DNA of 64,000 nucleotides, taken from NCBI GenBank assembly GCA_040285825.1, contig JAUPSS010000004.1:3390550-3454549 (forward strand), in the 5' to 3' direction. A model generated the notes under the pieces. That model was not told where the DNA came from. It saw nothing but the letters and a program-made list of their open reading frames with translations, and made no database searches. Positions 3,824 to 40,329 of this stretch are shown piece after piece (within the stretch, counting starts at the first letter, position 1; every line of letters begins with the position of its first letter). Source of the stretch: Eukaryota sp. TZLM1-RC (Eukaryota > Protista > Metamonada: BaSk clade). The position numbers were made by a program, and so were the translations under genes.

Positions 3824-3840
3824 TTTTGTTTCATAGTTGT

Positions 3841-4197: not shown

Positions 4198-4509
4198 ATG
4201 GCTGGCCGTGGAAAAGGTGGAAAAGGTTTAGGTAAAGGTGGTGCCAAGCGCCATAGAAAGGTTCTTCGTGAAAACATCCAAGGTATTACTAAGCCTGCTA
4301 TTCGTCGTCTTGCTCGCCGTGGCGGTGTCAAGCGTATCTCTGCACTTATCTATGATGAAACCCGTACTGTTCTCCGTACTTTCCTCGAAAACGTGATCCG
4401 TGACTCTGTTACTTATTGTGAACATGCAAGAAGGAAGACTGTCACTGCAATGGATGTTGTCTATGCTTTGAAACGTCATGGACGTGTTTTGTATGGTTTT
4501 GGTGTCTAG
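4198..4509 (+). CDS. H4: Histone H4
   Basis: [46 protein letters not shown]. Confidence 0.98.
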
Positions 4510-4523
4510 GTTTTTGTTTTTGG

Positions 4524-4539
4524 GGTGTTTATCAACACT
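4524..4539 (+). other. Histone 3' stem-loop (H4 copy 1)
   Basis: GGTGTT-TATC-AACACT immediately followed by AATAAA. Confidence 0.8.
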
Positions 4540-5234
4540 AATAAATCAAGATCTTCTTTAAATTTCCTTTTATACTCGTTTTGCAATGTACTAGGTTTTT
4601 CCAACCAATTATTATTTAACGATTATGATGTTGATTTATAAGTTTTCTAATAAATAAACATTATTAAAAAGAATTTCAACCAATGATGTGGTATAGTCCT
4701 TATATTCAAACTTATCATCTAAAATATTAATCTCACTGTGGTGATTCATTTTCTTGCCACCTCAAAAACACAACTTTTGAGATGAAACACAACGTACACT
4801 AGGGGACTTGTAGTGAGAGACAACTTCCGTGAGTTGTCAACTTTCAACAATCATTTTACACTCAAAAGCATCGATCCACTTACTTCGTCACTCTCATGCG
4901 CTTTCAGATATTTGTCAAGGCCAAGAACTACATAGTTGTAGTATGTTTTCAGTTTGTTGTGAAGAATTCCTTATTGTAAAAGAAATTTAAAGAATATCAT
5001 TTAAAAATCAAAATTTGGAAAACCATTTCATCATTCCATAAAATACCTGGATCAGTAAATCAAACAGTTCTAACAAACAAATAATACTGCTCTTGGTAAT
5101 AAAAACTAAAGCTCAAATTGCAAAAAAAGCTAAAAAGTGGTGTTGTCAAAATCATTGATTGACGCATATAGAATAATTGATTAACTGATGATTACAATCA
5201 AGTTGACCTTGAGCATAACAAAGCCTTCTTGAAT

Positions 5235-6089: not shown

Positions 6090-7139
6090 GGGGGAAATTC
6101 CTATAAATACATGGTCAATTTTCGTGTGGAATAATTACAAAAACTATCTACTACTGATACGGATACTGAGGCCTTTCATTACCACTCATTCTGGCTTCAG
6201 CAATTGCAAACATATTCAGACAAGCCAGCTAATTTCTATTGAAAAGCTTTGTTGACCCTTTGTTGCTGAGTCTACAACCCTCACTGTTGCAAACTAATAA
6301 ACCATGACATGTAGTAACAGGAGTCTTTTCTCTTCTATAGAATCTAGGATTTGTTACTCTCAAAAACGTAGCAACCTTTTCAAAACAAACAGGACATTTT
6401 GCTGAAGTGAACACTTCATTAATCATCAATACTTCAAATCCATTCCTTTTCAGAAATTGAGTCCATCCAATGCCACGAGTAGGCCTATGATGTTTCAAAT
6501 TCTTGGAACCTTTTTTACCATAATCACCCATTAGAATTAAAGTGTTTCTTGGGTTGCCAAAATTCTGAACAAGGTTTTTTAACAACCAACTTTCAGTCTT
6601 TTGTTTGTGAATAAAAGCTTGCATTTTATGAATGCTCCACAAGTCAAGACTAAAAAAGTCAATTGTCAAAAACACTTGCCGAATTTTGGCAACCACAAAG
6701 TTGGAAAAATCTATAAAAGTTGCTGAATTTGCAGCAAACGCGGACAATTCGGTGTTTGCATCTTCAATTGTCATTTCGTAAGACTCTATCATCTGGTTCC
6801 TGTCGTAATCTACCTCAGTATACTTTGTCGCCCATCGTTTTTGCTTTTCATTCATCCTGCTTTTTGAAGACCAGGACATCTGAGTCATTCTTAACCATTT
6901 GTACTTCTTGTCTTGATTCATCACCCGACTATTTCTTTGCTGTTCGGTTTCATGTTCAGGAACCATGGCTTGTTCTTCATCAGTCTTTTTACTCCCAAAA
7001 TACAATAAATCACGTTTTCCAGGATCACAAACAACAATTCGTTTGTCTTGAAAAGCATCAACATCAACATCATCAATAAATCAGAAATACTAGCCTTGTT
7101 GTCTGGCTTACATTTCTGACCTTGTACATCCTGACGAAA
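6090..7139 (-). mobile_element. Fanzor element copy D (3' fragment: RuvC/zinc-finger part plus 3' hairpin end)
   Basis: VVCDPGKRD, LMGDYG, INEVFTSAKCPVC, HGLLVCNSEGC, FNRN; high DNA similarity to copies A and C. Confidence 0.85.
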
Positions 7140-7945: not shown

Positions 7946-10900
7946 CTAAATCACAACACATGAATTGTTAACAAATCTTTCCTGATAATGAACAATCAAA
8001 CTAGCACGTTTTTCTAGTTCATCGGCTTTTCTCATTCCATCCTCTGAATCACCCCTTTCCCTGTACAAAGATGCAGCCACTTTAAGCACCTTCTTCGATG
8101 CTTCTGCATGCTCGCAAGCTATCAAGTAAAGTTCCTTCAAGAGTGAATGATCAACAGAACAAACTCCCTTTCTCTTCTCTCCTTCATAAACATCTATGGC
8201 CCTTTCCACATGTTCCAATGTTGGAGAGCGCAGATAAGCAATGCTGTAGGACTCTTCAGGAAATGTAAAGTTTGTGGTGTTGAATAGAAAATTTACAGCA
8301 TCTTTAAAATATTTGGCAGCAGCCTTCTGATTTGCAGTCCTTGTAACGGAATCGCCTTCTGTTGTTGATTTTTTCAAAAGTTCATCTCCAAGAACAAAAC
8401 AAGCATGTGGATGATGTTTTTTGGCAGCTAGATTGAGGAATTTCTTCTTTTTTTCAGAATCTCCGTTAGTGGAATAGTACTTGAATAATTCAAACGCACA
8501 ATGTGCACCTTCATTGGAACCTTGCTCAAATGCTTCAATAGCCTTTTTAAAATAACCATCATCTATTACTCTTTCTGTAACAACCAGTTTGGTATAGAAA
8601 GCTTGATAAAGAATTCCCTTATAGAAAAAAAGATCACCCAACAGAGAGCGTTCTTGTTCAATGTTTTCATAGTCAAAGTGGCTGAATTTCGCTCTTGACC
8701 CTTCTAATAACACTGAGAAAGAGTCAGTGAGCTGGATCAAATCATGAAACTCTTGATCGGAAATTCCTTGTAGACATTGATACCTACAAATACGAATTTC
8801 AACCATGAAAAAACAACTTAAATGATGACCACCATTGAAAGCTGCTTGGTAATACAAAAGGGCTTCATCTAGGTTAGGGTTAGCGTTAGCGTTAGGGTTA
8901 GACTTTTGATGTAATAGCCTTGCAACATTATAAATTGCTTCCAAGTCTTCTAAATCTGCTGCTTTTTTCCAATAAGTCAAAGCTAGTTCATCATCCTTCA
9001 CATCACCAGAACCAAGTCTGTCCTGATAGTATTTTCCAAGTAACTTACATGCATTAACATTATCTTTTTTGGCAGCGTTGGCAAGATACTTGACGCCATG
9101 TTGACATTTATCCTTCAATTCATAACCAAAAACATTTGATACTTCAGTAGCATCGGCATCCATTAAGAGCCACTTCCCCATTTCCTCCATTGCATTAGGA
9201 AACCCACATTCTGCTGCATTCTGACACAATCGGCGACCTTCTAGAACATCTCCCTCGTTCCCTCTTTCCATTAATATAAGTCCAGCCTTGAAAAAACATT
9301 CAGGTGATTCGAGAGCCAAACGGTAATACTCCAAGGCTTTTTCGGTGGAATTTGGTCTGGTCAATGATTCTTTAAGATAATGATCACCAATCAAAAGACA
9401 AGCTTCTGTTATATTATGCTTTGCAGCTTCTTTCAAATAACTAATCCCCAAATCCTTTGGAAAATTCAAACCCGGGTTTAAATAAATCTTGCCCAATTCC
9501 AACCAACCAAGCACATATCCTTGTTGATGTGCAAGTTGGAAATACTGAATAGCTGGATCAAAATCATTCATCAGCTTTGAACAAATTCCCGCCTGATAAG
9601 CACCTTCAGCATGATTAGATTTGATAGCTATCTTAAAGCAAGCGAGAGCTGTGGTCAAAGAAGGCTTACCAAGGGAATTGTCCATGTAAAGTAACCCTAA
9701 TTCATAACTACAGGCAGGACATTCAAGTTCAAATCCCTTTTGGTAATAAAACATGGCAGAGTTGATGTTATTCAAATAACGACGATACACTTGTGCCAAG
9801 TTGAAATAAATAAAAGGGTAAAATGCAGAAATTTCAAAAACTTCCTCGATAGAAATAAACTCAATCCCAGGAATCCAATCTGACTGAGGTTCCACACCCA
9901 GGACTTGTTCAAAGAGACTAACAACTTCATTTACATCCTCATCCCTGTAATGATCTTGAGCTTGGTCTATGATGGTCATTAAACACTTTGCAGCATGAAA
10001 AGCAGAAGCAAGGTTGAAGAAGAGATTGAAAGAGGATTTGAACATTTCAAAAGCCGCAATATTATCATTTTGGGACTCAAGATTTACTGCACATTTATAC
10101 TTTGAAAATGCACAAAACCTCTTCTCAAGTTGATCCAAGACGTCCATGTTTGAAATGCCATAATACAAAGCTGTGGCTTTGGTGCAATCTTTAGGTAAAA
10201 CAAAGCCGTATTCTAAACAAAGGGCTTGGTAGACAATACTTGATGGGTGATTGGGAGTTACATTCAGCCAATTATTGAACCAATCAAATCTGATTGATTG
10301 GAGAGGGAGTGGATCCTTGGCAGTTTGATTAATACCCTCGAGTTTAATTAATTGTGAAATGATTTTAATAGACACATCAGTTGAAATTTGGTCAATGATT
10401 GATGTTGTCCGAGGAAGTGAGCCTAAAATAAGCTTTAAATCTCCAAAAAAATCAATTGTGGCATCTCTACATTTGGATAGTTCTGCTAAAATTGACAGTA
10501 CATTCTGTGATTTAGCTATAATATCAGAATGATTAATGGATTGAGTAAAGGAAACTTCGAACAAAGAGTGAAACCCGACTGAACCAAAACAGTGTTCCAA
10601 CAATTGTGCTAAATCTAGGCAAGCTAAATAAATCTGATTCTGATTTACATCTACCAATTGGGTGAATGATGCAACTGAAGAAGAAAATAGACCAAGTTCA
10701 ATTTCAAAGATACCCTTGAATAACAAAGCATTTTGGTGGTTTGGTTGAATAGACAGACATTGAGAGAGAAGAAGAATAGAAGATAATTTACAAGAAAAAT
10801 CTTGCGACCATATTGAAATTGCTCTATAACAATAAGCTTGGGCTAAAGGTAAAGCTTTAGTACAAATTGCCTCAATTTTGGTGATGAATTTGTTCAATTT

Positions 10901-12742
10901 TTCTAAATATAATTCATGATTTTTTATACAATCGAGTTCTTTAAAATCAGACACTATTAGGTTGAGATTTAAGCAATCTCTATGATCACAATGAAAGGAA
11001 CATAGTGATCTGAAATCACCAATACAAAAATGATACAAGCTTTTGTAATAACACAATTCTTGGCACTTTGAGGAGTTGTAATGAGAAAGATTAATGAAAA
11101 TTGAGTCAAAGTCTCCATTATTAAAACAAGTTTTAATTTGGTCAAGATCAAGAGTTGATGCATCAGGATTATCACCGTCATCAACAATAAAATCATCACT
11201 TTCAGAGATTTCCTTGTTATTGACTTCTATTTGATGTAAGCTTGCCTTTTCCAAGTCTTTTTTCAATTCTGTTTCTTTTTCTATTTCCCTTTGTTGTTCT
11301 AATTGTTGTTGTTTGGATAGATTGAGTGATTCTAAAAGTGCAGAAACTCTATCTTCCAGGAAAGGAAAGTCATCATCATTGAATAAGTTTCTATTGATGA
11401 TACCATTAGTTTTTCTTAACAAACGCTGACACTCCACAAAATTCAAGTCATCAATTAAATCAGAAAATTCATTTAATTGAGATCTCCAATGTGGCAAAAG
11501 AGTTACCAATTCGTCTCTTTTCTTAACATTCTGATCATATTTTGAATCTAATTCCAAATAGAAACGCTCAATTTCAATTAATTTTGCTATTTCTTCTGTT
11601 AAATTAGCCTCATCAAATTGAACACCAGATTCTCCTAATTCAAAAGCACCATTTACTGGGTGAATAATGCAGCTTCTCGACCCAATTGAGATATTGAAAT
11701 AGGCAGCAACAACACGTTCTATTAATAAAAACTGGTTGTTTCTTTCAACAATATGAAGCCTGGCTATTTGAGTATTAGATAACTTTAAAGAAACTGTTTG
11801 GCAAAGTACTTTTAATTGATCAAATAAGTCTTTAACAATTGATTTAAACATTTTCCTTGTAATTCTCCCAGAAAACGATCCGTTATTCCCTCCATCCAAA
11901 TAAAAAGAAACCGATTCCTCTACAGATAAACAATTCCTAATAAAACTTGCTTGATTAACCAAATATTGCCACTCAAAACGACCCTCATTCCCTTCTTTCC
12001 TGACTTCATTCCTCAACCACTTGGCTAAACAAGTGTCAAAACTAGCATATCCAAGGTCATGAGAGGCCTCTCCTAGCTTGAGCACCGGATCTCCATTGTT
12101 GTTAGCCTCAATGACTGTCATGAAAGTGGAATGTGAACACATATCAAAAACAAGAAGGGTATCATGATTGGAAGAGGAGGACGACCGAAGCGGGGAAAAG
12201 CGGGCACTGAGAATACGTATCTGGTCAAGAGAAGAAGACAAGTTGACGTGGAGAAGGGATTCAAAATTGGTGAGGACTTTGAATCGGGAAAAACCAGCAA
12301 TTGTTACGGCTTTCTTTATAATTTCTCGTTGCTTACTGGTCCAAAAACCAGGAATCACAACAAGTATACCAGCAGCTGAACCATTGGTTTGTCTTCTTAT
12401 ATGTCCAAGGAGCATGCCCAAGAGAAGCGATGAAGGTAGGTGCTGTAAGTTATCATTATGTTGAACAGTGGCTTGTATTTCGTTTGGATGGTATGTGAGG
12501 TTTTCGGATAAGGGAAACCATTTGGGAATATCATCGGGAGAGGTAACTGCTAATAGTTGTTTAAGATCTGAGAATCTGTTATGACGACCTTGACGGCGAA
12601 TAATCTGACCAAACTCTCGATGATCACTGAGGAAAGCAATTGTATCATCGAAATATTTCAAGACTGTCTGTTGAGGATCTGAAGAAGAACGACAGGATAC
12701 AGCAATCTGTCGTGAAGAGAGATCTATGGCAATGTAATCCAT
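7946..12742 (-). CDS. Divergent Hsp70/Hsp110-like NBD fused to TPR and SEL1-like repeats
   Basis: N-terminal IAIDL, VIPGFWTSKQREIIKKAVTIAGF, LVFDM, LGYASFD, ITRKMF resemble Hsp70 NBD motifs; C-terminal repeats of the A..LG..Y..G....A..Y...AA..G type. Confidence 0.75.
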   Translation of the reverse strand: MDYIAIDLSSRQIAVSCRSSSDPQQTVLKYFDDTIAFLSDHREFGQIIRRQGRHNRFSDLKQLLAVTSPDDIPKWFPLSENLTYHPNEIQATVQHNDNLQHLPSSLLLGMLLGHIRRQTNGSAAGILVVIPGFWTSKQREIIKKAVTIAGFSRFKVLTNFESLLHVNLSSSLDQIRILSARFSPLRSSSSSNHDTLLVFDMCSHSTFMTVIEANNNGDPVLKLGEASHDLGYASFDTCLAKWLRNEVRKEGNEGRFEWQYLVNQASFIRNCLSVEESVSFYLDGGNNGSFSGRITRKMFKSIVKDLFDQLKVLCQTVSLKLSNTQIARLHIVERNNQFLLIERVVAAYFNISIGSRSCIIHPVNGAFELGESGVQFDEANLTEEIAKLIEIERFYLELDSKYDQNVKKRDELVTLLPHWRSQLNEFSDLIDDLNFVECQRLLRKTNGIINRNLFNDDDFPFLEDRVSALLESLNLSKQQQLEQQREIEKETELKKDLEKASLHQIEVNNKEISESDDFIVDDGDNPDASTLDLDQIKTCFNNGDFDSIFINLSHYNSSKCQELCYYKSLYHFCIGDFRSLCSFHCDHRDCLNLNLIVSDFKELDCIKNHELYLEKLNKFITKIEAICTKALPLAQAYCYRAISIWSQDFSCKLSSILLLSQCLSIQPNHQNALLFKGIFEIELGLFSSSVASFTQLVDVNQNQIYLACLDLAQLLEHCFGSVGFHSLFEVSFTQSINHSDIIAKSQNVLSILAELSKCRDATIDFFGDLKLILGSLPRTTSIIDQISTDVSIKIISQLIKLEGINQTAKDPLPLQSIRFDWFNNWLNVTPNHPSSIVYQALCLEYGFVLPKDCTKATALYYGISNMDVLDQLEKRFCAFSKYKCAVNLESQNDNIAAFEMFKSSFNLFFNLASAFHAAKCLMTIIDQAQDHYRDEDVNEVVSLFEQVLGVEPQSDWIPGIEFISIEEVFEISAFYPFIYFNLAQVYRRYLNNINSAMFYYQKGFELECPACSYELGLLYMDNSLGKPSLTTALACFKIAIKSNHAEGAYQAGICSKLMNDFDPAIQYFQLAHQQGYVLGWLELGKIYLNPGLNFPKDLGISYLKEAAKHNITEACLLIGDHYLKESLTRPNSTEKALEYYRLALESPECFFKAGLILMERGNEGDVLEGRRLCQNAAECGFPNAMEEMGKWLLMDADATEVSNVFGYELKDKCQHGVKYLANAAKKDNVNACKLLGKYYQDRLGSGDVKDDELALTYWKKAADLEDLEAIYNVARLLHQKSNPNANANPNLDEALLYYQAAFNGGHHLSCFFMVEIRICRYQCLQGISDQEFHDLIQLTDSFSVLLEGSRAKFSHFDYENIEQERSLLGDLFFYKGILYQAFYTKLVVTERVIDDGYFKKAIEAFEQGSNEGAHCAFELFKYYSTNGDSEKKKKFLNLAAKKHHPHACFVLGDELLKKSTTEGDSVTRTANQKAAAKYFKDAVNFLFNTTNFTFPEESYSIAYLRSPTLEHVERAIDVYEGEKRKGVCSVDHSLLKELYLIACEHAEASKKVLKVAASLYRERGDSEDGMRKADELEKRASLIVHYQERFVNNSCVVI

Positions 12743-18450: not shown

Positions 18451-19388
18451 TCAATCTTCTTTTTTCGAGTAATTACATAAGGGAGACCGTAATCGTTTCT
18501 GGTTACTTATACAAGAAGGTGTGCAAATCGTTACACAAGACACCACAGAAGGTTGCTTCTTCTTTAGTTCCTCATGACGCTTTGGGTCAACCTTTTGGAT
18601 GACTGTTTGGGTTACTACCTCGTCAGAAGGGAGCGGAGGAGGGGCTGAGGTGGAAGACTTCCTTTTACGAGACCGTACGATGAAATCATAAGTGGTGAGT
18701 CCGGAACGAAGCAACCCGACATGGAAGATAAGCAACTGTAGGAGGAGGTAAGAGGTGGGAAGCGAGACGAGACCTATAAGTGAGAGAAATGCAAGCTTCA
18801 CCCACTTGAAGGAAATTGACCTGAAATGACTTCGCAGGGGACCGAAAATGATAAACAAAAATACTAAAAACGTGGTTATACATAGAGAGACGGCCAGGAA
18901 CGTCATGATAATCAACAACACAAAGAACTGTACATAATTATGCGCCTTGGACACACAAGTGTTGAGATACCTGCAATGATGATCAAAGTTGCTGGAGTTA
19001 GGGGATATAATTATAAAACGCACCTTACACATTTATTACACAGTTTGCAGTGCTTGGAGTTGGGCAACACGTGGGTCTTGCATATACAACAATAGTTTTG
19101 TTCATCAACTACTCTGAAACCTGGTGGTAAGGTTTTAGAAGACCGTGTTATCCTAGTATAATCAACAGAAGGGTCTGCTGGGTCTATGAACGAGCACCAA
19201 AGTTTGAGAAAAACACCCAGCGAAAGGAGAAATATCCACGGGTAGGCAACATATACAAATGCGAAAGGAGGAATAAAAGGAAGTAATACAAGGAAAAAAC
19301 CGGAAGCAAAAAAACCAAAGATAGATATGGCTATGATCTGGACAACATCGAATGGTCGTTGAAGTCCATGGCGTCGTGAATGACGCAT
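18451..19388 (-). CDS. DHHC palmitoyltransferase (intron 18992-19023)
   Basis: MRHSRRHGLQRPF start; C..C...V...[25 protein letters not shown] after splicing a 32-nt GT-AG intron; four TM segments; TTYDFI. Confidence 0.92.
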
Positions 19389-19838
19389 TGAATAAGAGTC
19401 CACAAATAGATAACTGTTGTTGCAAAGTAAAACAAGATTTTTCTGTGGGAAATTCCCATAATAATTACAATCACTATCACACAGATATTGAGGTCTTTCA
19501 TCACCACTCATTCTGGCTTCAGCAATTGCAAGCATGTTCAGACAAGCCAGCTTATTTCTATTGAAAAGCTTTGTTGAGCCTTTGTTACTGAGTTTGCAAC
19601 TCTCACTGCTGCAAGCTAATAAACCATGACATGTAGTAACAGGAGTCTTTTCTCTTCTATAGAATCTGGGATTTGTTACTCTCAAAAACGTAGCAACCTT
19701 TTCAAAACAAACAGGACATTTTGCTGAAGTGAACACTTCATTAATCATCAATACTTCAAATCCATTCCTTTTCAGAAATTGAATCCATGCAATGCCACGA
19801 GTAGGTCTATGATGTTTCAAATTCTTGGAACCTTTTTT

Positions 19839-19988
19839 TTTTTTGATTTTTTTTTCTGGAGTGGGTAAGAGACATCCAATAAGCTCTTCAACAGAAGACA
19901 AACCTCGGGCAGCCAAGTAATGAGATAGGCCATTTTCTAATTCATCCAATATCTGAAGACCATATTTGGTGGGTAGAGTACAGAACTG
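19839..19988 (-). pseudogene. Retroposed mRNA fragment (DHODH/DPYD-PreA-like C-terminal part) with poly(A), inserted in the Fanzor ORF
   Basis: QFCTLPTKYGLQILDELENGLSHYLAARGLSSVEELIG followed by an A-tract; interrupts GDYG|KKGSK, which is intact in copies C and D. Confidence 0.7.
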
Positions 19989-20135
19989 CATAATCACCCA
20001 TTAGAATTAAAGTGTCTTTTGAATTGCCAAACTGCCCGAACAAGGCTTTTTAACAATCAACTTTCAGTCTTTTGCTTGTGAATAAAAGCTTGCATTTTAT
20101 GAATGCTCCACAAGTCAAGACTGTAAAAGTCAATT

Positions 20136-23100
20136 TCTCTTAATTGGAAGAACAAAACAATCTTTATTGATTGATGATGTTCAAATTCCTTTCATTAATT
20201 ACGAACAACAAGCGTTCAAGTTTCTTGGATGTTGGTTAGGTAATTTGGATGAAATTTATTCCCAATTGAACAATTTATTGGAAAATTTTGATAAGGATCT
20301 TAGTTTTATTGCTGAATTTTATTTATTGAATTTGCACACTTAATTAAATTAACTCAATACTAATGGGACGAATGTCATTGAACCAAGATTTCCTCTACAA
20401 AATCTTGATTTGCTTGCTGTCTAGCTAAAGCTTCTCTTATTCGATTGAAAAACCGTGGTAATCTATTAATAATGGCAAATTGAATCCGTGAACGCCATAA
20501 AAAAATATCAAATCTTTTCATTGTTTTTTCTTTCACCATTTTTTGGAAGTCATCCAAAAAAGTTTCTGCTTCAACTGATAATCTTCCATTTATCGAAAAT
20601 GGGAAAGCGATAAAAACGAGCTGTGTATTTCAATCGACATTTGCCTCTTCAATGTCTTTATCATATTTTCTATGTTTCTCTCTTGCTTTAAAATCCAGAG
20701 CAGCCACCGGATTAAGTTTTCTTCTGTGAACCAAAGTATCGTTTGCAACATTACATGAGACAAAGTCAACAATAGCTTCAGAATTATCAATCCAATCACA
20801 GTATACATCACCTCTATCATCAGAACCAAAATTATTCAGAGAAAGTGTTTCCTTCAGCAGGGGCTCTTTGATACACGATATCCTTGAAGTTTGTGTCATA
20901 TTGAAAACAGTGTCTCTAACAGCATCATGTAATGAAGAACGATAAGTTATCAATTTAGAGCAATTCAGAGCATGGCGCAAAGTGAGTTGAGGTGAATTCG
21001 AACAAATACATTTTTCTTTTGATAATAATTGATTAATGGGGATATTCAAATATAATCTCATTTTTGTTACAAATGCTTCATTAGTGGCACACAATCCAAA
21101 TCTTCGTGGTACAATAGTTACAAAAAGTGAAGAATCTGACGACTTGTTTTCACAAACACCCATTTCCAATAACAATGAGTGAAGATCTTGATTTAAAACA
21201 GCCGAGCTGCATATATTATTATAAAGATCTTTTTCATACATTCCAGTCAATCTTTTCTGTAATGTTCGAAGAGTGTACTTCAAATTTAAAACATTTTTTT
21301 CTGGAATATTACCATTAAATGATTGGGGAAAACATCGACCCCATTTTTCTACATCAATTCTTGAAATTTCTTCATTTAATGCAAAAACAGTGGAACTTTG
21401 CGTTGTCATCAATAAATCTTCCCAATCTGCAAATCTTTCGGAAAACTCAAAGATTGCATTTCTGCATCCACCAACAAAAGCACACGAGGTAAGAATAGAA
21501 GCCTTCGTCCACCCTAAACCGCCATAATGTGGACTAAGGTAAGCATGATCTGGAATTTGAAACATTTTACATCCCAGTAATTGAGACAGAACTTTTGCAC
21601 GTAACTCATTAAACTTCTGAGCCAAAGGTCTAGTGACGAGAGGATTTGTAGATCGAAATATATGATTAAAATTGGAACTAAAACACAGTCTTATAATGGT
21701 AAATTTGATATGTTTTTTTATATCTAAATTCATCATTCGGTCAATTTTGTCAGAAATTGAGTTCAACTTTTCAAACAATTTTTTGGTAATTTCATCATTA
21801 TTTCCTAAAAACGAACCCAAATGACAAATAGCATCAATTGAATATAATTTGGCTTGAATTTCAATACCATCAACTATTGCGGAAACTGGAGAATTCGATA
21901 ACAAAACACATTTAAGTAAATTAAGTCGGAGACCAATTTTGGTAAATAATTCTTTAAAACATACAGTTGCTTGTTTCACAATATTTAAATCCCCAACAAG
22001 CACAACATCATCCATATATGCAATCATTTTTAGTGAAGGAAACATCTCTTGAATTTGCAGTAAAATAGGATGAATGGCCAAACAAAACAAAAGAGGCCCT
22101 AACGGATCTCCTTGCTTTACACCACTTGATGAACTCAAAATGTTATCACCAAAATGTAAATTAGAATATGTGCAATATGTTGATTGAAAATACGGTATTA
22201 ATTCCGGCATATATTGCAATTGAGCACCATGGATACTGCGACGACTTAGTGAATTGAAAGCATTACTAAAATCCAATGACATACAAACATTGGATTCATT
22301 TTGGCGAAATAAAACATCAGTAGCAAAAATTGCTGAAGAGACTCCGTCTGTAGTATTTATACCATATTGAAAGGGTAATAAAATCTTTTTAGCTTTTTCG
22401 TTGAACCTGCTTAAGCAACACGCAGAAAAAATATTGTGTAAGCTCTCAGAGACTGCAATAGGACGAACATCCATTTTTGAATTTTTGACAAGTGCAGTCA
22501 AACGAGAACTTCTTAATTCTTCTGGGTATTTGAGTTGACCAGATAATATTTGGTTGAAAAATTTGGTCAATAAACCAAGGCAACCTTCTGAAGAAATAAT
22601 CGCGGCTTTTACATGATCAATAGTAATACCAGAAAGTCCGGCAGACTTACCACGTGGTCTCTTTTTGATAACCGAAAAAACTTCTGATGGCATCAATGGA
22701 TAATTTTCCCAGTATGTGCCGTAAAAATTTTGATCCATTATAGGGTCTTCATAAGGATGAAGTATTTTTAGTTTATCTTTTGTATTTTCATTGTTGGGTG
22801 CTTTAACTCCGGGACTTAAAGCTGACAAAGCCTTGGACCATTTGTTGTCAAAGCATTTGTCTTCAAAAATTTAACTTAATTTCTCGGATGACTGATTTCT
22901 CGGTGCTATAATAGTTAAATCTTCGGAAATATTTACGAAATTTTGTTCAAAAGGAGTTGCTGAATTTGATATTGAAAAACACATCAAATTTTTTATTTTA
23001 AAAATTTGTTAATCTGGTAAATTCACTCATATTTTAAGATCAACTCCTCCCTCAGTGTCTCTTGATTTTTGTAGATCTTTCAACAAACTTCGGGTCAAAT

Positions 23101-24397
23101 TTTTTTCCTCATTATTGGAGGTTAATGAATCTTTAATTCGAAGTCATGTTTTTTGTTCTGCTGACTTAGGTGGAATTGGTTTCACGAAATCTTCAATTTT
23201 ATGTAAAGCAGCTTTTTTAGGAGGCGGAAGAAATGTTGTTTTTGAATTTTTTCAAAGGTTTCCTTATGATGTTCATATGATCCATGGTGAATCTAATTTT
23301 TATTTGAATCAACTTCAACTTGAATTAGATAATTTGCCTAGTGATATCTGGATTCAGTGTTTTCCTCAAAATATTCAAGAAATTCCCACCCGATCTCTTC
23401 CAAATTTACGTTTTTGCTTGAAAAAGCTTCAGCACCATCTGGTTAAATTATATGAAGGCTTGGATTATGAAGTAAGACTTGGCTTGGCCAAAACTAAAAA
23501 TCCCGCTTTCGGTAATTTTTTAAAGGATATTCGTGATAGCTCTGCTGCTGCTCAAATTCCCTCAGTTTATGGACTTTTGTTAAAAAACAATGAATGGCTT
23601 TTAAACATGCGTTTTCGTTGTTTTCTGTTTCCAAACAATTTGCCGAATCATTTAACTTGTAAATGTGGTAAGCCTCTTTTGTTTACTCATCTTTTGAACT
23701 GTAAACATTTCATTACATTTAGAAGCAAAGTACATAATAACGTCAGGGACCAAATTTATGTAATGTGCAAATCATATCGAGTAGATTCCTTTTTACAACC
23801 GCTGTTATCAAAATTAATTCTTGATGACCCCAATATTGATAGTACGTGCTACAACAGAGCTTCTATGGGTCTGACAAGAGGTGATCTAGTTGTTCCCGGT
23901 TTAAATGGTAGTTTTACTATTTTAGACGCCATGTCTATTGACCCTTGTAATTCCTCTAACGAACATCTCATTAACTCAGATGTAAATAATCCTCTTCTTG
24001 CAGGCGAAAAATATAAAATTGCTAAATATGCGAAACCCATTTCCTCGATTAATGAAAATTCTCATGCACAATATAATTTATGTCCCTTTGTATTTTCTTT
24101 GCTTGGATCTTTGGGTAAGGCTGCTATGGCTTTCCTTGAAGATTTTGTTGTTGTTGTAAAGGAAAGAACTGGAAGAATTTTCAATCGTGTTTACTGGCAA
24201 AACAGGATTGTATTTTCTGTTTTTAAGGGAATGGTAAAACTGATTTCTGATTCACTGTCTTCTTTTGGGAAATTTTCTGAATCTTTGGCATTTAATTGTT
24301 TTGATGTAGGGGAGGCAGGTTTTGAGGATGTGGAGTTTTAATTGTGTATTTTATGTTTTGATATTCGTTGTTGAATAAATTTTTAAATTAAAAAAAA
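20136..24397 (+). mobile_element. 5'-truncated CRE-like non-LTR retrotransposon (family A), 13-bp TSD GTAAAAGTCAATT
   Basis: TSD at 20123-20135 and 24398-24410; AATAAA and poly(A) at the 3' end; ORF 23055-24341 has CKC..H..C zinc motif, HN, RGD, K..KY, PF (RLE); frame continues across the nested insert. Confidence 0.9.
20320..22956 (-). mobile_element. 5'-truncated CRE-like non-LTR retrotransposon (family C) with RT and RLE, 11-bp TSD TTGCTGAATTT
   Basis: RPIAVSE, LDFSNAFNS, GVKQGDPLGPLLF, YMDD, CIC..H..C, HD, RGD, KHRKY; TSD at 20309-20319 and 22957-22967; premature stop at 20630. Confidence 0.92.
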
Positions 24398-27195
24398 GTA
24401 AAAGTCAATTGTCAAAAAAAACTTGCCGAAGTTTGGCAATCACAAAGTTCGAAAAATCTATAAAAGTTGCTGAATTGGCAGTAAATGCGGACAATTCGGT
24501 ATTTGCATCTTCAGTTGTCATTTCGTTGGACTCTATCAATTGGTTCCAGTCGTAATCCACTTCAGTATACTTTGTCGCCCATCGTTTTTGTTTTTCATTC
24601 ATTCTACTTTTCAAAGACCAGGACATCTGAGTCATTCTCCGACATTTGAATTTCATGTCTTGATTCATCACCTCACTATTTCTTTGCTGTTCAGTTTCAT
24701 GTTCAGTCACCATGGCTAGTTCTTCATCAGTCTTTTTACTCCCAAAAAACAATACATCACGTTTTCCAGGATCACAAACAACAATTCGTTTGTCTTGAAA
24801 GTATCAACATCAACATCATCAATCTATAAATCAGAAATACTAGCCTTGTTGTCTGGCTTACATTTCTGACCTTGTACATCCTGACGAACAAATTCTACTG
24901 CAATATTTAAATCCATCTGTGTGGATAATGTTGTTGAATTTATAGCTCTTCTGTTTGAACATTGGTTGGTTTAAATCCAGAATATCAGACCAAAAGTCAA
25001 ATTGCTGAGGTGGTTTGAATTTCATAATTTGGGGTAATGTATTGGACATTTTCAGCGTCTGTGTAGATGATAAATCATCAATTAATGTTTGTTTAACAAT
25101 TCTCCTTATTGTTCTTGTATCAATGGGAAAATATCCAGGACCTACAGTGGTTGAAACAGGAGAAATATGATAAGGTTTTTTCTCTCTACTGGAGATATAT
25201 TGGGCAATTGCAATTGCTGGTTTTGGGAATATTTGAGGATCTTTTTCATTAGCGTCTGCAAGAAAATGTATATCCACTGGAAATATGTTGTCAACTAAAT
25301 TGTCGTCAGTGACCAAATTCTCAATTTGACAAGTAAATCGCTCAATAAGACCTTCAAATATGTCTCTAAGTTCATTATTTCTTATATCATGTTGTTCACA
25401 TAAAGCGAAATATTCATCATTCAGAAGGTCTGAAATATTTTCAGGATGATGAAACAAAGAACTCAAGCAATCTCTATCACCCGCTAAAAACAAGTTTTTG
25501 AATTGACGAAGCCTAAATCTATATAGTGAAATAATGGTAGATAATGGCGTTGAGTATCCACCCAGCTTGTGCATTTCTGTTAACACATTTTTCACATCTA
25601 CTTTGTCAAAGTAAACATTAATAAATCGATTAATTTGTTTTTCATAATTTAGTTTCAAATTATTCTCGAAATTGGAAAACATTACTGGGGCTATGTACTC
25701 AGGTGGTCTACTGAAGCCATCAGTTGGAGATTGTGGAAAAAACTCAGTCCTATATCTCAAATGGTCTACAGAACTCAATGTTTTGTTCAACTTTTGTTGT
25801 TCAAAGGTGGTCGATAATCTATAATCTCCTTCACCATAAACAAAGTTTTCAAAATCCTGTGGAAATGCACTCTTTGGTTTCACCATTTCTTGCCCATAAT
25901 ATTCAGCTGAAATATAACGAATTCTGGCCATTAATGATTCATATAATTGAACAGATGTTCGTGGTGGTATAAAATTACGTTCAAAACAAGACTGTAAATA
26001 CAGCTTTAAGCAACAAGTGGTGTGAATACGCAATTGTTGAAATTTTAAAGCAGTTTTTCTCAATTTGAGTATCACATCTGAATGTTTAACCATTGAGTTG
26101 ACGGTTGCTCGAATGGTTTTATAAGACGATAAAACAAATTTGTCTTTCTGAAACAGCACGAACAGTTTCAAACAAATGATAAAATCATGATGCCGATATT
26201 GAATCGAATTTTGTCTCAGAGTAGAAGTAGCTAAACAATCAATTGGCAAAATATGGGAAAATTCCTGATGAAGTTTGATTTTCGTTTCATTTATCATTTT
26301 ATATGCCAGATTGCCTAATCCATTTCCGTAGGGTATTTTAATAAATTTCTCGGCTAAAACCTAAGTATCTAAAAGAAAAAAGCCATTTTCCCTGATGAAA
26401 ACTTCTCTCCATCTCGGTGAAAGTTGATTGAGTACATCAATTGTTGAATCATTTCGAACAGTGGGAAATGGTAAATCAAAATAATTTAATCTATTTTTCG
26501 AAACCTGTAAATCAAACTGCATTAAATTGTGATTGAGAAAACAATGGGGTTGATGATCACCAATAAGGTTTAAGAACCTACGAAGCAAGGTTTTTTCGTC
26601 AGAGAAAATTTCTGCCTGAATATCAATATCAATGTCTGGTAATCTGACTTGAGGATTCATTCTCAATATAAGTGAATATTTACTCTCCAAAAAGAAATTA
26701 TGGCGATCAAACTTACCAATAACAATCGAAATTAAAAACACTTTTTGATCTGAAATCCACTCACCCATTTGCTCATCAGTTTTCTTTTTCAAAAGATTTA
26801 CACCCTCTTTTTCTCTTTTTGTTGATAATCTCGTCAGGAGGGAGAAATTGGCCATCATGATTTTGGTAAAGATAACCGCTCTGATATGTTTCAAGATCAA
26901 AGCACATAACAGTGGGAAAATTTTGATTTGGGGTCATTGATTTAGTTGAAATCAATGAATCAGGCTTGGAGCCACTAAGACTTGGCCCAATTTTTCTGAC
27001 CATACACGGATTCAATGGTTTTTTTGTCAAAATCTTCCTGTTCTCGATATTCAACATTGTATTCTCAATACAAATTTCTCGGTTCAGTGCTGTTTGTTGT
27101 TTTTTTAGCTTACGCTTTGATGTTTGTTGGTCAAAAATCGCGTTTCTAATAATTTTTGGTGGAGGAATTGATTTGAAATTAGATCTTCTCTTTCT

Positions 27196-27255
27196 GGGAC
27201 CAGGATTTGCTTCAACATCTCCATCCATTGTTTAATCAACAGTAAATGGGTTTGT
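27196..27255 (-). other. 2A-like (StopGo) ribosomal-skipping peptide in the Fanzor polyprotein
   Basis: NPFTVD(L)TMDGDVEANPG|P matches D-(V/I)-E-x-N-P-G-P; the Leu codon is TAA in copy A but TTA in copy B. Confidence 0.8.
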
Positions 27256-28221
27256 TGATAGAAGATGTTGGCAGCTACTGGATTGAAAAGATAAATTAGT
27301 GACATAATAATCAAACTCAACATTATCAAAATAACAATTTAAGACACAACATTCCATATCTAAAGTGCAACAATCTGAACCGCAAAAATGAACAAACTCA
27401 TAAACATCAAAACAACAATGTAAAACAAAACACAAAGAAGAACATCCCATATCTAAGGTGATTAGCACCATGTCTGATTCAACAGCACCCATATCATGAC
27501 TCAAATGATGACTGAAAAAAGTGTAATACTCTACCCCCACGGAAGGATAAGAACGACGATTCCGATAGGAAATCGAGGCTCTGACCTTCCGTTTATTCCT
27601 TCAAAGCAGGATTACTGTTCCCGACTGAGGAGTTCGGGAGGAAGTACTCTGCTGTTCTGTGAAGAACAGGTTGAAGGAGGAGGTGGGAACCGGGTCCGTA
27701 ACCTCGTTATCCTTTTTCTTGTTCCGCTGCATGATGTTAGAAGAATGGGAAGAGTCGAGATAATCTCGCTGTCTGACACGATGTCTGACATGCTGATTGC
27801 AATTTCAAATTGATTGCTAATTTCCACAATGGTATCAAATGCCTATCCACTGTATCTCTATTAGTGGTCATCAACATCAGCTCGGTTTACCCTCTAGCTG
27901 TTCTGGTCGTTGTTACTCCGACTAAACTCTATGTTTTTTTCCAGTTTCCTTCTTCCTTTACCTCTTGTCTTCTTCCCATTCAGCTATCTCAACAATTCTC
28001 CCTTCCTCTCTCCCTCTCTGTTTCGACGGGACCTAAACAATTGCTTGATTCCCTACTTTCTACTCTGTCCACATTTTCTAACTCAATACAGTCTTCTTCG
28101 TCAGTTCAACTCCACCCTCACCTCTCCTCATGTCCTTCAGTTCAGTTCATAAACAAATTTGGAACCTGGACTGAAATGAACTAAAAGTCTGTTGTTCTCC
28201 TTGATGAGTTGTGTATGCATC

Positions 28222-28500
28222 TTGGATTGAAACAAATTCCATTGGTAAAAATCTCAATCGCAGTTTTAGTTTTGAGCAGTGTTATTGTTTGTGGCGGACA
28301 TTCAAATTCATTTCTGTGGTTTTCATTTGAAATGCATACTTAAAATAGACTAGCGGAGATAACTAACAAAAGACAGTCTGTAGAGGCACTGCTGGCTATT
28401 CTTGAGTCTAAACTCGAGTCTATTGCAGATCGTCCATCCCAAGCTGCTTCAACAACTTCTGCTGCGTCACCCCCTTCAGCTGTCCTTCTTGTCTTGAAAC
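28222..28500 (+). pseudogene. Possible degenerate WASHC3/CCDC53-like fragment
   Basis: NRLAEITNKRQSVEALLAILESKLESI resembles the CCDC53 ILExKLxSI motif; in-frame stop upstream. Confidence 0.3.
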
Positions 28501-29369
28501 TAGACATCTGAATTCTTATTATTACCTTGTCTCTCTACTTCACCCTCTTCACCCTCTTTCTACTCATCTTTCCTCCATAGAAGATGTTCCTCCTGTCTTC
28601 ACTTGTATTACCATCAGTTGTCAATATACACCCTTACACCTCTGGTATCGTTTGTTCACTCTCTACGAATCAACTCACTCCAATCTTAATCTACTCTAGA
28701 TCAAGATTTTTGAATTTCTTCTTTATTTCTGTGTCTTTAATAGGTGGATCTTGTTCTTTGACATTACGTGAAAGAGCTCAAGTAGCTACTGTGGCTTAGA
28801 TAAATGTAAGGTAAATATTTAACAAAATAAAATTAAAGACTGATACAAAACTAATTATTGAATACTGCCCATTATGAAAAATTTGCATGCAGACAACAGA
28901 CTGAACTGATGTTGTCAAATCAAGTTGAAATCAGTGAATTTAACACTATTATTCATACAATATACACAAAACCAATAAAAAAGTTGAAAATAAGATACAT
29001 GAGCGTTGAGTGATGCTAGTCACATTAAATATTGCGGCGGAAGATGATGAACAACAACAGCATTTGAAATTGAAAGCGTCCACTAACGTATAATATGCTT
29101 CTTACAGTGTATATCTTAATTAATGTGCTTTGAGTGTGTTCTTGTCGTTGTATCAAATTTAAGAAAGCTGAAATACAATTTTCACGTAGTGAAGGAGACA
29201 CAGTCATTTTATGTCCAGGTGCTTACAAGGTACAAATTGTATATGACTCTGTCGAATTGAGCTCAGATTGAATTACAGAATATGGTGACACCAACGATAG
29301 CTCTTGTAAATTGTAGAGATGAATGTTCATTTAGAACAAACTTTAAAAAAGAAACACATCCTTCAATCA

Positions 29370-36684: not shown

Positions 36685-36791
36685 AGAAAAACTATCAAGG
36701 TGACATTAGTAGAACGAGATAAACAACATTAGTAGAGTCAGTAATTTATAACAAAATTTAGTACTTTTTTGGTATTGATAAACACCAAAAC

Positions 36792-37103
36792 CTAAACACC
36801 AAAACCATACAAAACACGTCCATGACGTTTCAAAGCATAGACAACATCCATAGCAGTGACAGTCTTCCTTCTTGCATGTTCACAATAAGTAACAGAGTCA
36901 CGGATCACGTTTTCGAGGAAAGTACGGAGAACAGTACGGGTTTCATCATAGATAAGTGCAGAGATACGCTTGACACCACCACGGCGAGCAAGACGACGAA
37001 TAGCAGGCTTGGTAATACCTTGGATGTTTTCACGAAGAACCTTTCTATGGCGCTTGGCACCACCTTTACCTAAACCTTTTCCACCTTTACCACGGCCAGC
37101 CAT
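36792..37103 (-). CDS. H4: Histone H4 (cluster 2); stem-loop at 36771-36786
   Basis: Protein identical to 4198-4509; ATG at 37103. Confidence 0.98.
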
Positions 37104-37476
37104 TGAGATCGATGAAGATAAGAATACAAGATTTGAAAGGACTTTTGGAATTTGAGTATGATTTTGCAAATTGTCCTGCCAAGATAAATTGTTGTTTGTT
37201 AATGGTGATTGTTGGGTTTCAGGGTTCTTCAACTTAGTTGATGTCATGGTCTGTGTGATTAGGACAGTGTCATGTACTGGAATGCAGGAAAGGTACATTA
37301 TGGTTTTGCAGTAATTGAAACGCTGTAATGGTGAATAAACAACATTCTTTACAAACATGCTAGTATGCTTTTTTGGTATTTATTTTGTGTGATAATATTT
37401 GAAACGAAAAACAAGATCATAACCTAAATTTATTCAAAAGTTGAGTATTGAAGAACACCACAACTATAAAACAAAA

Positions 37477-37884
37477 TTAAAAATCAGAACGAATTCTCTT
37501 AGCCAAGGCCATATCCTTGGGCATAATGGTAACACGTTTAGCATGGATAGCACAGAGATTGGTGTCTTCAAACAAACCAACAAGGTAAGCTTCAGCAGCT
37601 TCTTGAAGAGCAGAAATACCAGAGGCTTGGAATCTCAACTCACCCTTAAACTCTTGGGCAATTTCTCTAACCAAACGTTGGAAGGGTAGCTTACGGATTA
37701 AGAGCTCAGTAGACTTTTGGTACTTTCTGATTTCACGGAGAGCAACGGTACCAGGACGATAACGATGGGGTTTCTTGATACCACCAGTAGCGGGGGCAGC
37801 TTTGCGAGCAGCCTTGGTAGCCAAATGCTTTCTTGGAGTCTTGGTGGAGGTAGTCTTGCGAGAGGTTTGCTTAGTACGGGCCAT
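37477..37884 (-). CDS. H3: Histone H3 (cluster 2); stem-loop at 37444-37459
   Basis: Protein identical to 3416-3823. Confidence 0.98.
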
Positions 37885-38270
37885 TAGTGGAGATCAGGAT
37901 TATGGTAAACTGCATTGTAATTGAGCAGAAATTCAGAGCAGGGAAAATGTCTTGCAAGAATCAATTGTCATTTGCTTTTGTTGGATGGTTAGTTTTTGGT
38001 GGTTTGGTTGTGTAGACCTACGGCTTTGTTGTCGCTCTTCATCAGATGTGCACTTAATTCTTGCCCTATATGGAACTATTGAAATATTAAATGTGGGTTC
38101 TGTTTAGGAACAACAGGTTTAGCAAATCCCAATTTGATTGAACAATTGTCATTTGTATTTTCTCCAAAACTTCTATTCTGATGAAAACATCAATAAAACA
38201 TTTTAAATTAAAATACACAATAAAAAACAAATTTATCCAGTGTTGAAAAACACCATCAAATACCACAAAT

Positions 38271-38705
38271 CTATTCACCTTCACCAGCAGAGGTAAACTT
38301 GGTAACAGCCTTGGTTCCTTCTGAAACAGCATGCTTGGACAGTTCACCGGGTAGCAATAATCTAACAGCAGTCTGAATTTCACGAGATGAAAGAGTATTC
38401 CTCTTGTTGACACGAGCAAGACGGGAAGCTTCAGTGGCGATACGTTCAAAAATGTCATTGACAAAAGAGTTCATGATTCCCATGGCCTTGGTGGAGATAC
38501 CAGTATCGGGATGGACTTGACGAAGGACACGGTAAATGTAAGTAGCCCATGTCTCCTTACGGGCCTTCTTGCGCTTGGGGGCAGCAGCGGCAGCACCGCC
38601 TTCAGCAACAGCTTTGCTTACAGCTTTGGCAGGAGCCTTTGATGGGGCTTTGGATGGAACTCCCTTGATGGATTTGGTAGACTTTACAGACTTCTTTCCA
38701 GGCAT
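38271..38705 (-). CDS. H2B: Histone H2B (cluster 2); stem-loop at 38239-38254
   Basis: Protein identical to 2602-3036. Confidence 0.98.
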
Positions 38706-38854
38706 GAGATTGAGAGAAATGGTGATTGAGATTCAGGTTTTGCAACAAAAACAAGTTGATTCAATGTTTTGCCACAAACGACAATCTTGCAACAATCAAA
38801 ATTGTCGTGTTGAAATTGAAATTCTATTTCCTCATCCTCATTAATTCATCTCTC

Positions 38855-39238
38855 ATGGCTGAAGAAACTGGTGCTCGTACTCTCTCCTTCAAAGCTGGAC
38901 TCCAATTCCCTGTAGGTCGTATTCGTCGTTACCTGCGTGAAGGTCGCTATGCTGAACGTATTGCAGCTGGCGCTCCCGTTTATATGGCTGCTGTCCTCGA
39001 ATACCTCACCGCTGAGGTCCTTGAATTGTCTGGTAACGCTGCTAGAGATAACAAGAAGACCCGTATCGTCCCCAGACACATTCTCTTGGCTATCCGTAAT
39101 GATGAAGAACTGAGTAAGCTGTTGTCCCACATCATGATTCCCTCTGGTGGTGTTCTTCCTCATATTCATTCCGATCTCCTTCCCAAGGGGTCCAAGGCTC
39201 GTGTTGAAGCCGAAGAACAAGCTTCCCAGGAAATCTAG
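38855..39238 (+). CDS. H2A: Histone H2A (cluster 2); stem-loop at 39251-39266
   Basis: Protein identical to 2069-2452. Confidence 0.97.
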
Positions 39239-39677
39239 GTTGTTTTATATGGTGTTTTTCAACACTTTTTGGGTAATAAATGTGATTTTCTGAATAAAAA
39301 GTTCTTCATTTTATCTATCTTAAAGAACCAAAAATAGCAAATAATGAATCCTAGAATCAAAGTAACTGAGCTGTGGAGTTAGTTAATGTATGCAAAATCT
39401 GTAAATGAGGACGCTTGCCATGTACAAGAAGCAAAACACTCAGAAGATGGTTAATTGACCAATATTTTATGGCTAATCTTTACATTCAAACACAATGAAA
39501 TGAAGGTCTTGGCAAGTACAATTCCAGCAATTGTCTTATAAATGATGAGAATGTTGATCAACGATTCCAAATTAAATAATCAGTTTCAAACAAATTATAG
39601 AAAATTATAAGCTACTTTACAGCAACAAATAAAGCAAATTTAAAATCTTTATTAGTGTTGAAAAACACCCCAAAAAC

Positions 39678-39989
39678 CTAAACACCAAAACCATACAAAA
39701 CACGTCCATGACGTTTCAAAGCATAGACAACATCCATGGCAGTAACAGTCTTCCTTCTGGCATGTTCACAATAAGTAACAGAGTCACGGATCACGTTTTC
39801 GAGGAAAGTACGGAGAACAGTACGGGTTTCATCATAGATAAGTGCAGAGATACGCTTGACACCACCACGGCGAGCAAGACGACGAATAGCAGGCTTGGTA
39901 ATACCTTGGATGTTTTCACGAAGAACCTTTCTATGGCGCTTGGCACCACCTTTACCTAAACCTTTTCCACCTTTTCCACGGCCAGCCAT
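39678..39989 (-). CDS. H4: Histone H4 (third copy); stem-loop at 39654-39669
   Basis: Identical H4 protein; upstream ~210 bp resembles the cluster-1 H4 upstream region. Confidence 0.98.
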
Positions 39990-40329
39990 TGAGATCGATG
40001 AAGATAAGAATACAAGATTTGAAAGGAGTTTGGGAATTTGAGTTTTGATCTGAAAATTGTCTTGCCAAGATTAATTGTTGTTTGTTAATGGTGATTGTTG
40101 GCTTTCAGGGTTCTTCAACTTGGTTGATGTAATGGACCATCTCATTAGGACAATTTCGTGTGCTGGAATGCAGGAAACGCATATTATGCTTTTGCAGTAA
40201 TTGTATCACTGTTCCAGTTAATAGATATCGTGACACATGGTAGCATATGTAAGTAGTTTTAGTTTCAAATCTATTGTCTTCTTTTAGATGATAAAACACT
40301 TTCTTGTACAATGTGCATTTCATGTTTTG

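Follow-up and report, generated by a model that had tools for sequence, protein, structure and literature searches.

A 2A-linked DEDDy exonuclease-Fanzor1 polyprotein in a multi-copy element family of the metamonad Skoliomonas

Fanzor1 (Fz1) nucleases, among them SpuFz1, PpFz1 and GtFz1, combine a DPG-type RuvC-I motif, an E-x-x-T-S motif and a C4 zinc ribbon with a short non-coding 3' end. The elements that carry Fanzors differ in their termini. Spu-1 is bounded by terminal inverted repeats (TIRs) of 30-33 bp, and CRe-1/2/3 (Helitron2) and MCi-2 have intact 3' ends, frequent 5' truncation, differing 5' regions, terminal hairpins, no internal transposase and target site duplications (TSDs) of 7-19 bp or 11-12 bp (Bao and Jurka 2013, PMC3627910). 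In the current study, we analyzed a Fanzor1 element in a 64-kb stretch of DNA (hereafter the window) from Skoliomonas (Eukaryota sp. TZLM1-RC), a free-living soda-lake metamonad with a genome of 31.9 Mb, 35.8% GC and 55% repetitive content (PMC11316075). Its protein shares sequence, fold, all the motifs named above and the short non-coding 3' end with Fanzor1, and the D/E/N triad with GtFz1, but differs in having a family-B DNA polymerase (PolB)-type exonuclease of ~250 amino acids (aa) at the N-terminus, a 2A polyprotein layout and optional Ulp1 domains. The element resembles CRe-1/2/3 and MCi-2 in all the traits listed except the TSDs, which were not found, and unlike Spu-1 it has no TIRs. 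Neither an exonuclease nor a 2A has been reported for CRe-1/2/3 and MCi-2.

An initial sequence-only reading had proposed that the element encodes a leader, a 2A peptide, a DEDDy exonuclease and a Fanzor1 in one open reading frame (ORF) of roughly 1300 aa. This architecture is real. The element holds one ORF in the order variable leader, 2A, zero to two Ulp1 domains, basic linker, DEDDy exonuclease and Fanzor1, followed by a fixed structured 3' end, and it is present in many copies. Natural, unspliced ORFs demonstrate this directly (P and L numbers denote the proteins compared and the loci holding further copies, respectively). P0102 of the window family (1195 aa, L009 6001-9588) has no stop between the leader and the end of the Fanzor part, includes the 2A and lacks most of the linker and ExoI through an in-frame deletion, while P0059 (1905 aa; leader-2A-Ulp1-Ulp1-linker-exonuclease-Fanzor1) and P0056 (940 aa; exonuclease-Fanzor1), both from Skoliomonas sp. 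TZLM3-RCL, are uninterrupted direct contig translations. A further uninterrupted natural ORF lies in L002 (9986-13876). Besides, P0115 retains the leader, a decayed 2A, the linker and a complete exonuclease, in L007 a single frame with two stops, both open in the window copy A, extends from ExoI to the end, and P0113 is an intact C-terminal Fanzor ORF. In the window family the whole ORF spans ~1280-1380 aa, varying with the number of leader repeats, and 1100 aa follow the 2A (97 of linker plus 1003), in agreement with the lengths first proposed. Short called introns in the database models P0008, P0055, P0080 and P0096, and the P0036 model that fuses the element to a host helicase, could suggest that the ORF is an artefact of joined degraded fragments or of false introns bridging frameshifts. 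This explanation is refuted, and we give it practically no weight, since P0102, P0059, P0056 and P0113 translate from contigs without introns and the domain junction recurs in seven families.

The window holds three copies of the exonuclease-Fanzor, A, B and C, all on the minus strand and with 91-95% mutual identity. They belong to a multi-copy family, of which eight copies were examined (89-95% identity) and at least 42 proteins fall in one cluster. Copy A (19445-28136) is a dead copy. Its core (19445-28040), common to the near-full copies A, B, L009 and L010, measures ~4.2 kb without two inserts, close to the ~4.3 kb first estimated; a 5' extension (28041-28136) is common to A and B only, and L009 and L010 have a common 270-nt 5' extension of their own, unlike that of A and B. 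Copy B (52078-58699) is degraded, with inserts at 53019-53241, 54475-55708 and 57481-57981, and copy C (6090-7138) is 5'-truncated, beginning at A-position 24888, with an intact 3' end. In copy B, ~390 bp of the Fanzor gene are present twice (54079-54469 and 55709-56100; 82% identical) on either side of a 1.2-kb insert, and because of this duplicated segment the copy may consist of two recombined ones. For the domain searches, the pieces of copy A were used separately and natural ORFs took the place of a joined protein or consensus; its DNA segments were joined unaltered only to align them with other copies, and stop codons were treated as X.

All 11 point and short-indel coding lesions of copy A are private to it when compared with six other copies. 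Copy A has stops at TGA 27601-27603, TAA 27232-27234 (TTA in B, L009 and L010), TAG 26361-26363 and TAG 24824-6, and a further TGA at 20057-9 that is Trp in B, C and L007. Its single-base indels are +1 at 26812, +1 at 24908, -1 at 24800, +1 at 24421 and +1 at 20034, and its short deletions are -2 at 19838, -4 at 19478, which removes the stop codon, and -25 at 19461. The two TGA stops, +1 24421, +1 20034 and the three short deletions are additional to the lesions reported by the sequence-only reading, whose TAA 27232, extra base near 26814 (here placed at 26812), TAG 26361 and frameshift near 24800 are indeed lesions private to A. Other details had to be corrected. The frameshift assigned to A near 27690 is an extra base in B (near 27693), and A agrees in frame with L009, L010, P0098, P0099, P0102 and P0115; the proposed start ATG 27791 is an out-of-frame upstream ATG, the ORF beginning at ATG 27732 (MQRN..). 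The frameshift near 24906 (24908) and TAG 24824, thought to be open in C, are open in B instead, as C starts only at A-position 24888 and has lost 4 nt of its own where the TAG would lie. Overall, no fixed stops or frameshifts separate the domains.

The exonuclease occupies 26130-26904 of copy A (minus strand; Pfam PF03104, E 3.8e-8), with ExoI DLET at 26887-26904, ExoII NxxxFD at 26511-26534 and ExoIII YxxxD at 26181-26198, and is broken in A by the +1 at 26812 and TAG 26361-26363. Seven families with 26-55% identity retain all the DEDDy residues, in the motifs DxE, NxxxFD (HxxxFD in P0014) and YxxxD, and PF03104 scored above the cut-off in 9/9 proteins. The exonuclease has dN/dS ratios (nonsynonymous to synonymous substitution rates) of 0.18-0.35, similar to those of the Fanzor part (0.14-0.29), and both domains are under purifying selection. 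Among solved proteins, the exonuclease comes closest in sequence and fold to Pol delta and other PolB exonucleases; the N-terminal part of P0008 matches Pol delta. In a structural model of P0056 built on a 32-row alignment (predicted local distance difference test, pLDDT, 79; single-sequence AlphaFold gave 33), exonuclease residues 31-190 mostly reach pLDDT 73-93 and adopt an RNase H-like fold that Foldseek matches to Pol delta, alpha and epsilon. The domain thus shares the ExoI-III DEDDy motifs and fold with the proofreading domains of family-B polymerases (Pol delta, Pol II, RB69/T4 gp43), but it lacks a polymerase domain and is fused to an RNA-guided nuclease. Co-divergence of the exonuclease with the Fanzor part is not established by the exonuclease tree, which is poorly resolved. 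DnaQ-like exonucleases are known as accessory domains of long terminal repeat (LTR) retrotransposons.

Directly after the exonuclease, P0008 matches SpuFz1 (E 4.9e-33) and PpFz1 (2e-25), and the L007 piece of the window family matches PpFz1, SpuFz1 and GtFz1. In a structure search with the P0056 model, the top seven hits were Fz1 structures, followed by PolB exonucleases, with TM-scores of 0.77 to SpuFz1, 0.63 to PpFz1 and 0.66 to GtFz1; the structural check suggested for the consensus therefore recovered both folds on a natural protein. Over the whole domain, the similarity is to solved Fanzor1 proteins and not to TnpB, Fz2 or Cas12. The predicted Fanzor1 motif order was located on the minus strand of copy A. 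A WED/REC region (24912-26123) ends at HTDG (24912-24923), and the RuvC-I region (24398-24911) contains DPG at 24756-24782 and the lesions +1 24908, TAG 24824-6, -1 24800 and +1 24421. A middle segment (19989-20135) includes the GDY strand at 19990-20010 together with TGA 20057-9 and +1 20034, and the C-terminus (19478-19838) carries HHRPTRG at 19794-19814, the RuvC-II glutamate in NEVFTS (E-x-x-T-S) at 19725-19742, the C4 zinc ribbon (CPVC 19707-19718, C..C 19596-19616), RuvC-III NRN at 19554-19565 and ERP at 19482-19499. The RuvC-I aspartate lies in a DPG-type motif, or DLG in the P0080 family. NRN is found in every Skoliomonas family with a C-terminus, and the strict 'RD' motif of 2013 is unmatched. 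A RuvC inactivated through NRN was rejected, because GtFz1 cuts with a D/E/N triad and the D606N substitution makes SpuFz1 more active (PMC11423790). On every testable feature of sequence and modelled structure, the element protein is a Fanzor1.

The direct fusion of the exonuclease to the N-terminus of WED, near the RNA-binding part, could indicate that it matures or trims RNA, either the 3' end of the guide or the element transcript, rather than cut DNA, and the DEDDy superfamily does include RNase D-type enzymes. Against this stand the best matches in sequence and fold, which are DNA-polymerase B proofreading domains and not RNases. TnpB-family proteins, moreover, process their own RNA with RuvC, which leaves us regarding an RNA substrate as rather improbable. 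Such end processing is treated in PMC10530073.

Upstream of the exonuclease, a basic K/R-rich linker of 97 aa (26905-27198) might serve as a nuclear localization signal, and is preceded by a 2A (StopGo) motif (27196-27240; motif 27196-27231) that ends in DVEANPGP, with TAA 27232-27234 just before it in A. The motif D(V/I)ExNPGP is placed in frame between coding parts and is exact in A, P0096, P0102, P0059, P0069 and P0080, with H variants in P0014 and P0042 and a degenerate DENVKANPGP in copy B. Six families have it at the equivalent position, with leaders that for the most part show no relationship. In the window family, the leader of A (27199-27732, 178 codons, TGA 27601-27603) is a Cys-rich tandem repeat of 32-33-aa units, of which A has two (starting at 27459 and 27366) and other copies three to six; natural copies P0096, P0098, P0099, P0102 and P0115 provide evidence for the repeat. 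Copy A lacks 267 and 27 nt relative to other copies and keeps the frame, which suggests that the leader is translated. The Cys-rich leader is thus part of the architecture in the window family, as first proposed, but not elsewhere, where leaders are unrelated or Ulp1 follows the 2A; as a conserved domain it was rejected, being unlike the leaders of other families and without a family match above cut-off. Ulp1 proteases are present in three families, and leaders and Ulp1 modules have been exchanged between families. L003 and L006, 97% identical to each other, lose their similarity directly ahead of an ATG that lies ~37 codons upstream of NPGP. These sequence comparisons suggest that the 2A would free the exonuclease-Fanzor enzyme from an interchangeable leader. 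Eukaryotic 2As are typically found near the start of coding regions; those described in eukaryotic genes and retroelements (Rao et al. 2025, PMC12338488) differ from the present one, which stands ahead of a Fanzor polyprotein, an arrangement for which we found no report. We also observed mosaic families (P0014, P0041, P0042 and P0063) in which the same leader sits on different exonuclease-Fanzor cores and a P0014-type Ulp1 module on a P0056-type core.

At least six divergent Skoliomonas families join the exonuclease to a Fanzor1, and the junction recurs in seven families. Among 1.84 billion representatives searched, all exonuclease-end matches with an assignable source came from Skoliomonas, and none of 12 other Fanzor matches checked fits the exonuclease profile. 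Word-based searches likewise returned Skoliomonas only, and scans of JGI metagenomes and IMG/VR with patterns suited to close relatives gave none; no relative was therefore detected outside Skoliomonas at this limited search sensitivity. In the tree, a branch with 100/100 support separates the Skoliomonas Fanzors from ten metagenomic Fz1-like proteins, all of them without the exonuclease, a topology that fits a single fusion without proving it. A fragment of a further exonuclease-Fanzor family, with ~70% nucleotide identity, was observed in L009 (1712-1883). As the sequence-only reading had supposed, the combination appears to be new: searches of the literature, whose scope did not include the domain survey in the supplement of PMC10530073, found no Fanzor bearing an exonuclease, a 2A or Ulp1.

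The 3' end is the same in 7/8 copies, ~60 nt past the stop, and the 5' ends are staggered. In copy A this putative omega-RNA scaffold (19445-19480, minus strand) retains the terminal hairpin (19445-19460) and has lost the 25 nt that carry the penultimate one. Two hairpins 4-5 nt apart close the 3' end in three families with differing sequences, and a fourth family keeps the penultimate hairpin more weakly. Folding z-scores were -3.0 and -3.5 in two families, and Rfam gave no match for the 3' end. No TIR or TSD was present in nine copies and no poly(A) tail at any copy, so that both a TIR/DDE transposon and an element retroposed by LINE machinery, which would carry a poly(A) or simple-repeat tail and a TSD, were rejected.

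These ends have to be compared with the two inserts of copy A, both missing from B, C, L007, L009, L010 and L011. The first, of 150 bp with an A-rich tail (19839-19988, minus strand), was correctly recognized as a later insertion and is probably a retroposed mRNA end. It matches nothing in Pfam or the PDB; its translation, before the A-rich tail, resembles what we take to be the C-terminus of a dihydropyrimidine/dihydroorotate dehydrogenase. The second (20136-24397, mixed strands) had been described as one TSD-flanked CRE element. The 13-bp TSD (20123-20135/24398-24410) stands, but the insert consists of two nested non-LTR elements: an outer, 5'-truncated plus-strand element (20136-20315 and ~23030-24397, poly(A) 24390-97) is split by an inner, minus-strand CRE-like reverse transcriptase (RT) element (20316 to ~23020; RT ORF 20630-22828). 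CRE-like RT elements occur at every locus and the A-tailed insert points to retroposition in trans in this genome. One could hence imagine that CRE-like RTs spread the copies in trans from element RNA, with fixed 3' and variable 5' ends reflecting incomplete reverse transcription, an RNA ending in the guide carrying over a guide-length flank, and the exonuclease-Fanzor only biasing or preparing the site. We consider this very doubtful, as no copy has a poly(A) tail or TSD, whereas the CRE-type insert in A has both, and CRE 3' ends show no preference for gene starts (0/11 within 63 nt).

Such a preference marks the window family. In 7/7 of its copies that have a 3' end, this end lies 16-63 nt ahead of the start of a co-oriented host gene, namely DHHC, WD40 (twice), hydrolase, MIF4G-MA3, longin and RRM-LRR genes. 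In copy A the 3' flank (19365-19444, minus strand), a putative guide, includes the start ATG 19388 of a DHHC palmitoyltransferase, 57 nt from the element end; copy B ends 45 nt upstream of the ATG of a WD40 gene and copy C 16 nt upstream of that of an alpha/beta-hydrolase gene. With the 63-nt limit, which was chosen after the fact, this placement is expected at 3.5% of sites, or at 17% if the null is set cautiously (17%^7 = 4e-6). A shared promoter motif matching the element end was tried and rejected. Besides, L003 and L006 share exactly 16 nt of 3' flank and then diverge, as do L010 and L011 after ~21 nt (16-22 nt range for both pairs; p <= 0.0005 for each). These lengths match the 14-21 nt from the target-adjacent motif (TAM) at which Fz1 cuts (PMC10432273). 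A 50-nt direct repeat in L003 (15652-15701 and 15802-15851) starts at the element end, recurs in the neighboring host gene and includes the 16 nt common to L003 and L006.

The sequence-only reading saw no transposase or RT in the element and left its mobilizing partner unknown, and we found none either: the flanks of 11 loci have no transposase, Rep or helicase in common, and neither a RepHel partner nor a Helitron with matching ends was found at these loci, a scope short of the whole genome. Helitron2-type asymmetric TIRs or a 5' hairpin are represented by weak AT-rich similarity only, the 5' end being undefined, and membership in Helitron2 is not established. Upstream of P0059 in L006 (800-6189, minus strand), a split PIF1 helicase accompanies two ORFs with Ulp1-like motifs noted by eye (no Pfam C48 match), possibly another mobile element; PIF1 was rejected as part of the exonuclease-Fanzor element because it is not shared with L003.

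Based on these results, we propose, with moderate confidence, that this is a non-autonomous, Skoliomonas-specific Fanzor1 mobile element acting through the following steps, inferred and given in order of falling certainty. The ribosome would skip at NPG|P, releasing an exonuclease-Fanzor of ~1100 aa from whatever leader is present. This protein would bind the omega-RNA from the 3' end, with the host flank as guide, and its D/E/N RuvC would cut the empty site. The fused 3'-5' exonuclease may then trim the 14-21-nt 3' tail that the Fanzor cut leaves on the TAM side. Since this tail mismatches the element-bearing donor at the junction, its removal would block simple re-joining and favor copying of the element from its 3' end, resulting in homing-like maintenance through copy-in repair. 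Trimming and copying from the 3' end would explain the intact 3' ends, the variable 5' ends and the lack of TSDs. For first entry into new sites the element would probably need help in trans, for which the likeliest candidate is an HUH/Helitron2-type enzyme that uses strand-opened DNA close to host gene starts; strand-specific placement, hairpin ends and missing TSDs favor such a partner by analogy with IS200/IS605 and Helitron2 biology. There are precedents for parts of this scheme. In intron homing, T4 polymerase contributes its 3'-5' exonuclease (PMC2988022), and in the one-ended CRe Fanzors the 7-19-bp TSDs lie downstream of a fixed tetranucleotide (PMC3627910). By comparison, such TSDs could be what an untrimmed tail would leave, and the Skoliomonas element has none.

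Several observations weigh against this proposal. In the window family the folding z-score of the 3' end is weak (-0.7 to -1.4) and no two-sided covariation was detected within the family. A clear preference for gene starts is confined to this family (7/7, against 1/7 for the other three families together), and a guide-length shared flank was found in just 2/24 copy pairs, where it may instead reflect a longer element end or a common promoter-proximal motif. The 11 loci, as stated above, yielded no common mobilizing gene, and the substrate of the exonuclease is not settled because DEDDy enzymes include RNases. Furthermore, an engineered fusion to T5 exonuclease lowered SpuFz1 editing (PMC13434818), although that enzyme has the opposite (5') polarity.

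Two other outcomes of cutting were considered. The element might do without a dedicated transposase: the exonuclease-Fanzor would cut guide-like sites just upstream of host gene starts and trim the break, and host repair, using a short match to the donor flank, would then copy in the element, starting from its 3' end. We regard this as unlikely; if true, it would represent a self-sufficient eukaryotic RNA-guided homing element with its own break-processing enzyme. On the other hand, the fusion might be destructive and play no part in copying: after the cut it would degrade the empty allele or foreign DNA, leading to the loss of element-free chromatids or of invaders. Tethered to a break, a processive 3'-5' exonuclease would widen it, and engineered exonuclease fusions serve this purpose. 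The guides, however, would be the 5' flanks of housekeeping genes (CWC22-like, longin, RRM-LRR), where large deletions are probably costly, and no virus-derived flank was seen, which makes a destructive role quite improbable.

For the copy-in proposal, the wider interest lies in how Fanzors help elements to persist in eukaryotes, which is an open question; a hard-wired exonuclease of the proofreading type indicates that it matters how the cut ends are processed. With P0056 and P0059, which are intact and natural, a single active-site comparison makes this testable. The engineered fusions TREX2-Cas9, T5exo-Cas12a and T5E-SpuFz1 also tether an exonuclease to an RNA-guided cutter, but the Skoliomonas fusion is natural, of 3'-5' type, polymerase-derived and kept under selection. 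It is thus a natural counterpart of what genome engineers have made, and may shift repair outcomes. The known diversity of Fanzors is further widened by a polyprotein layout with 2A and Ulp1 and by element ends that lie just ahead of host gene starts.

Some neighboring features were also observed. Because copy A lost its stop codon, a single open frame (19011-19997, minus strand) runs through the 150-bp insert, the Fanzor C-terminus and on into the host DHHC gene, and the NCBI model fuses all three. A second, unrelated TnpB/Fanzor-like family, with a weak TNB match and no similarity to P0113, is present in the window (28315-28696, minus strand), L007 (8750-9632), L010 (4315-4834 and 6305-6415) and L009 (5569-5679). 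In A, L007, L009 and L010 its 3' end, which also terminates in CCAC, is situated upstream of the exonuclease-Fanzor, and one copy in L010 ends ~20 nt before the start of a host PheRS gene, the same placement as that of the exonuclease-Fanzor. Elsewhere in the window, a histone gene cluster is duplicated in inverted orientation with 94% identity (2008-4545 and 36765-39299, also 39631-40223), and two long intronless host genes encode an Hsp70-like protein with Sel1 (1598 aa, 7946-12742) and a TmcB-like protein (1631 aa, 44370-49265).

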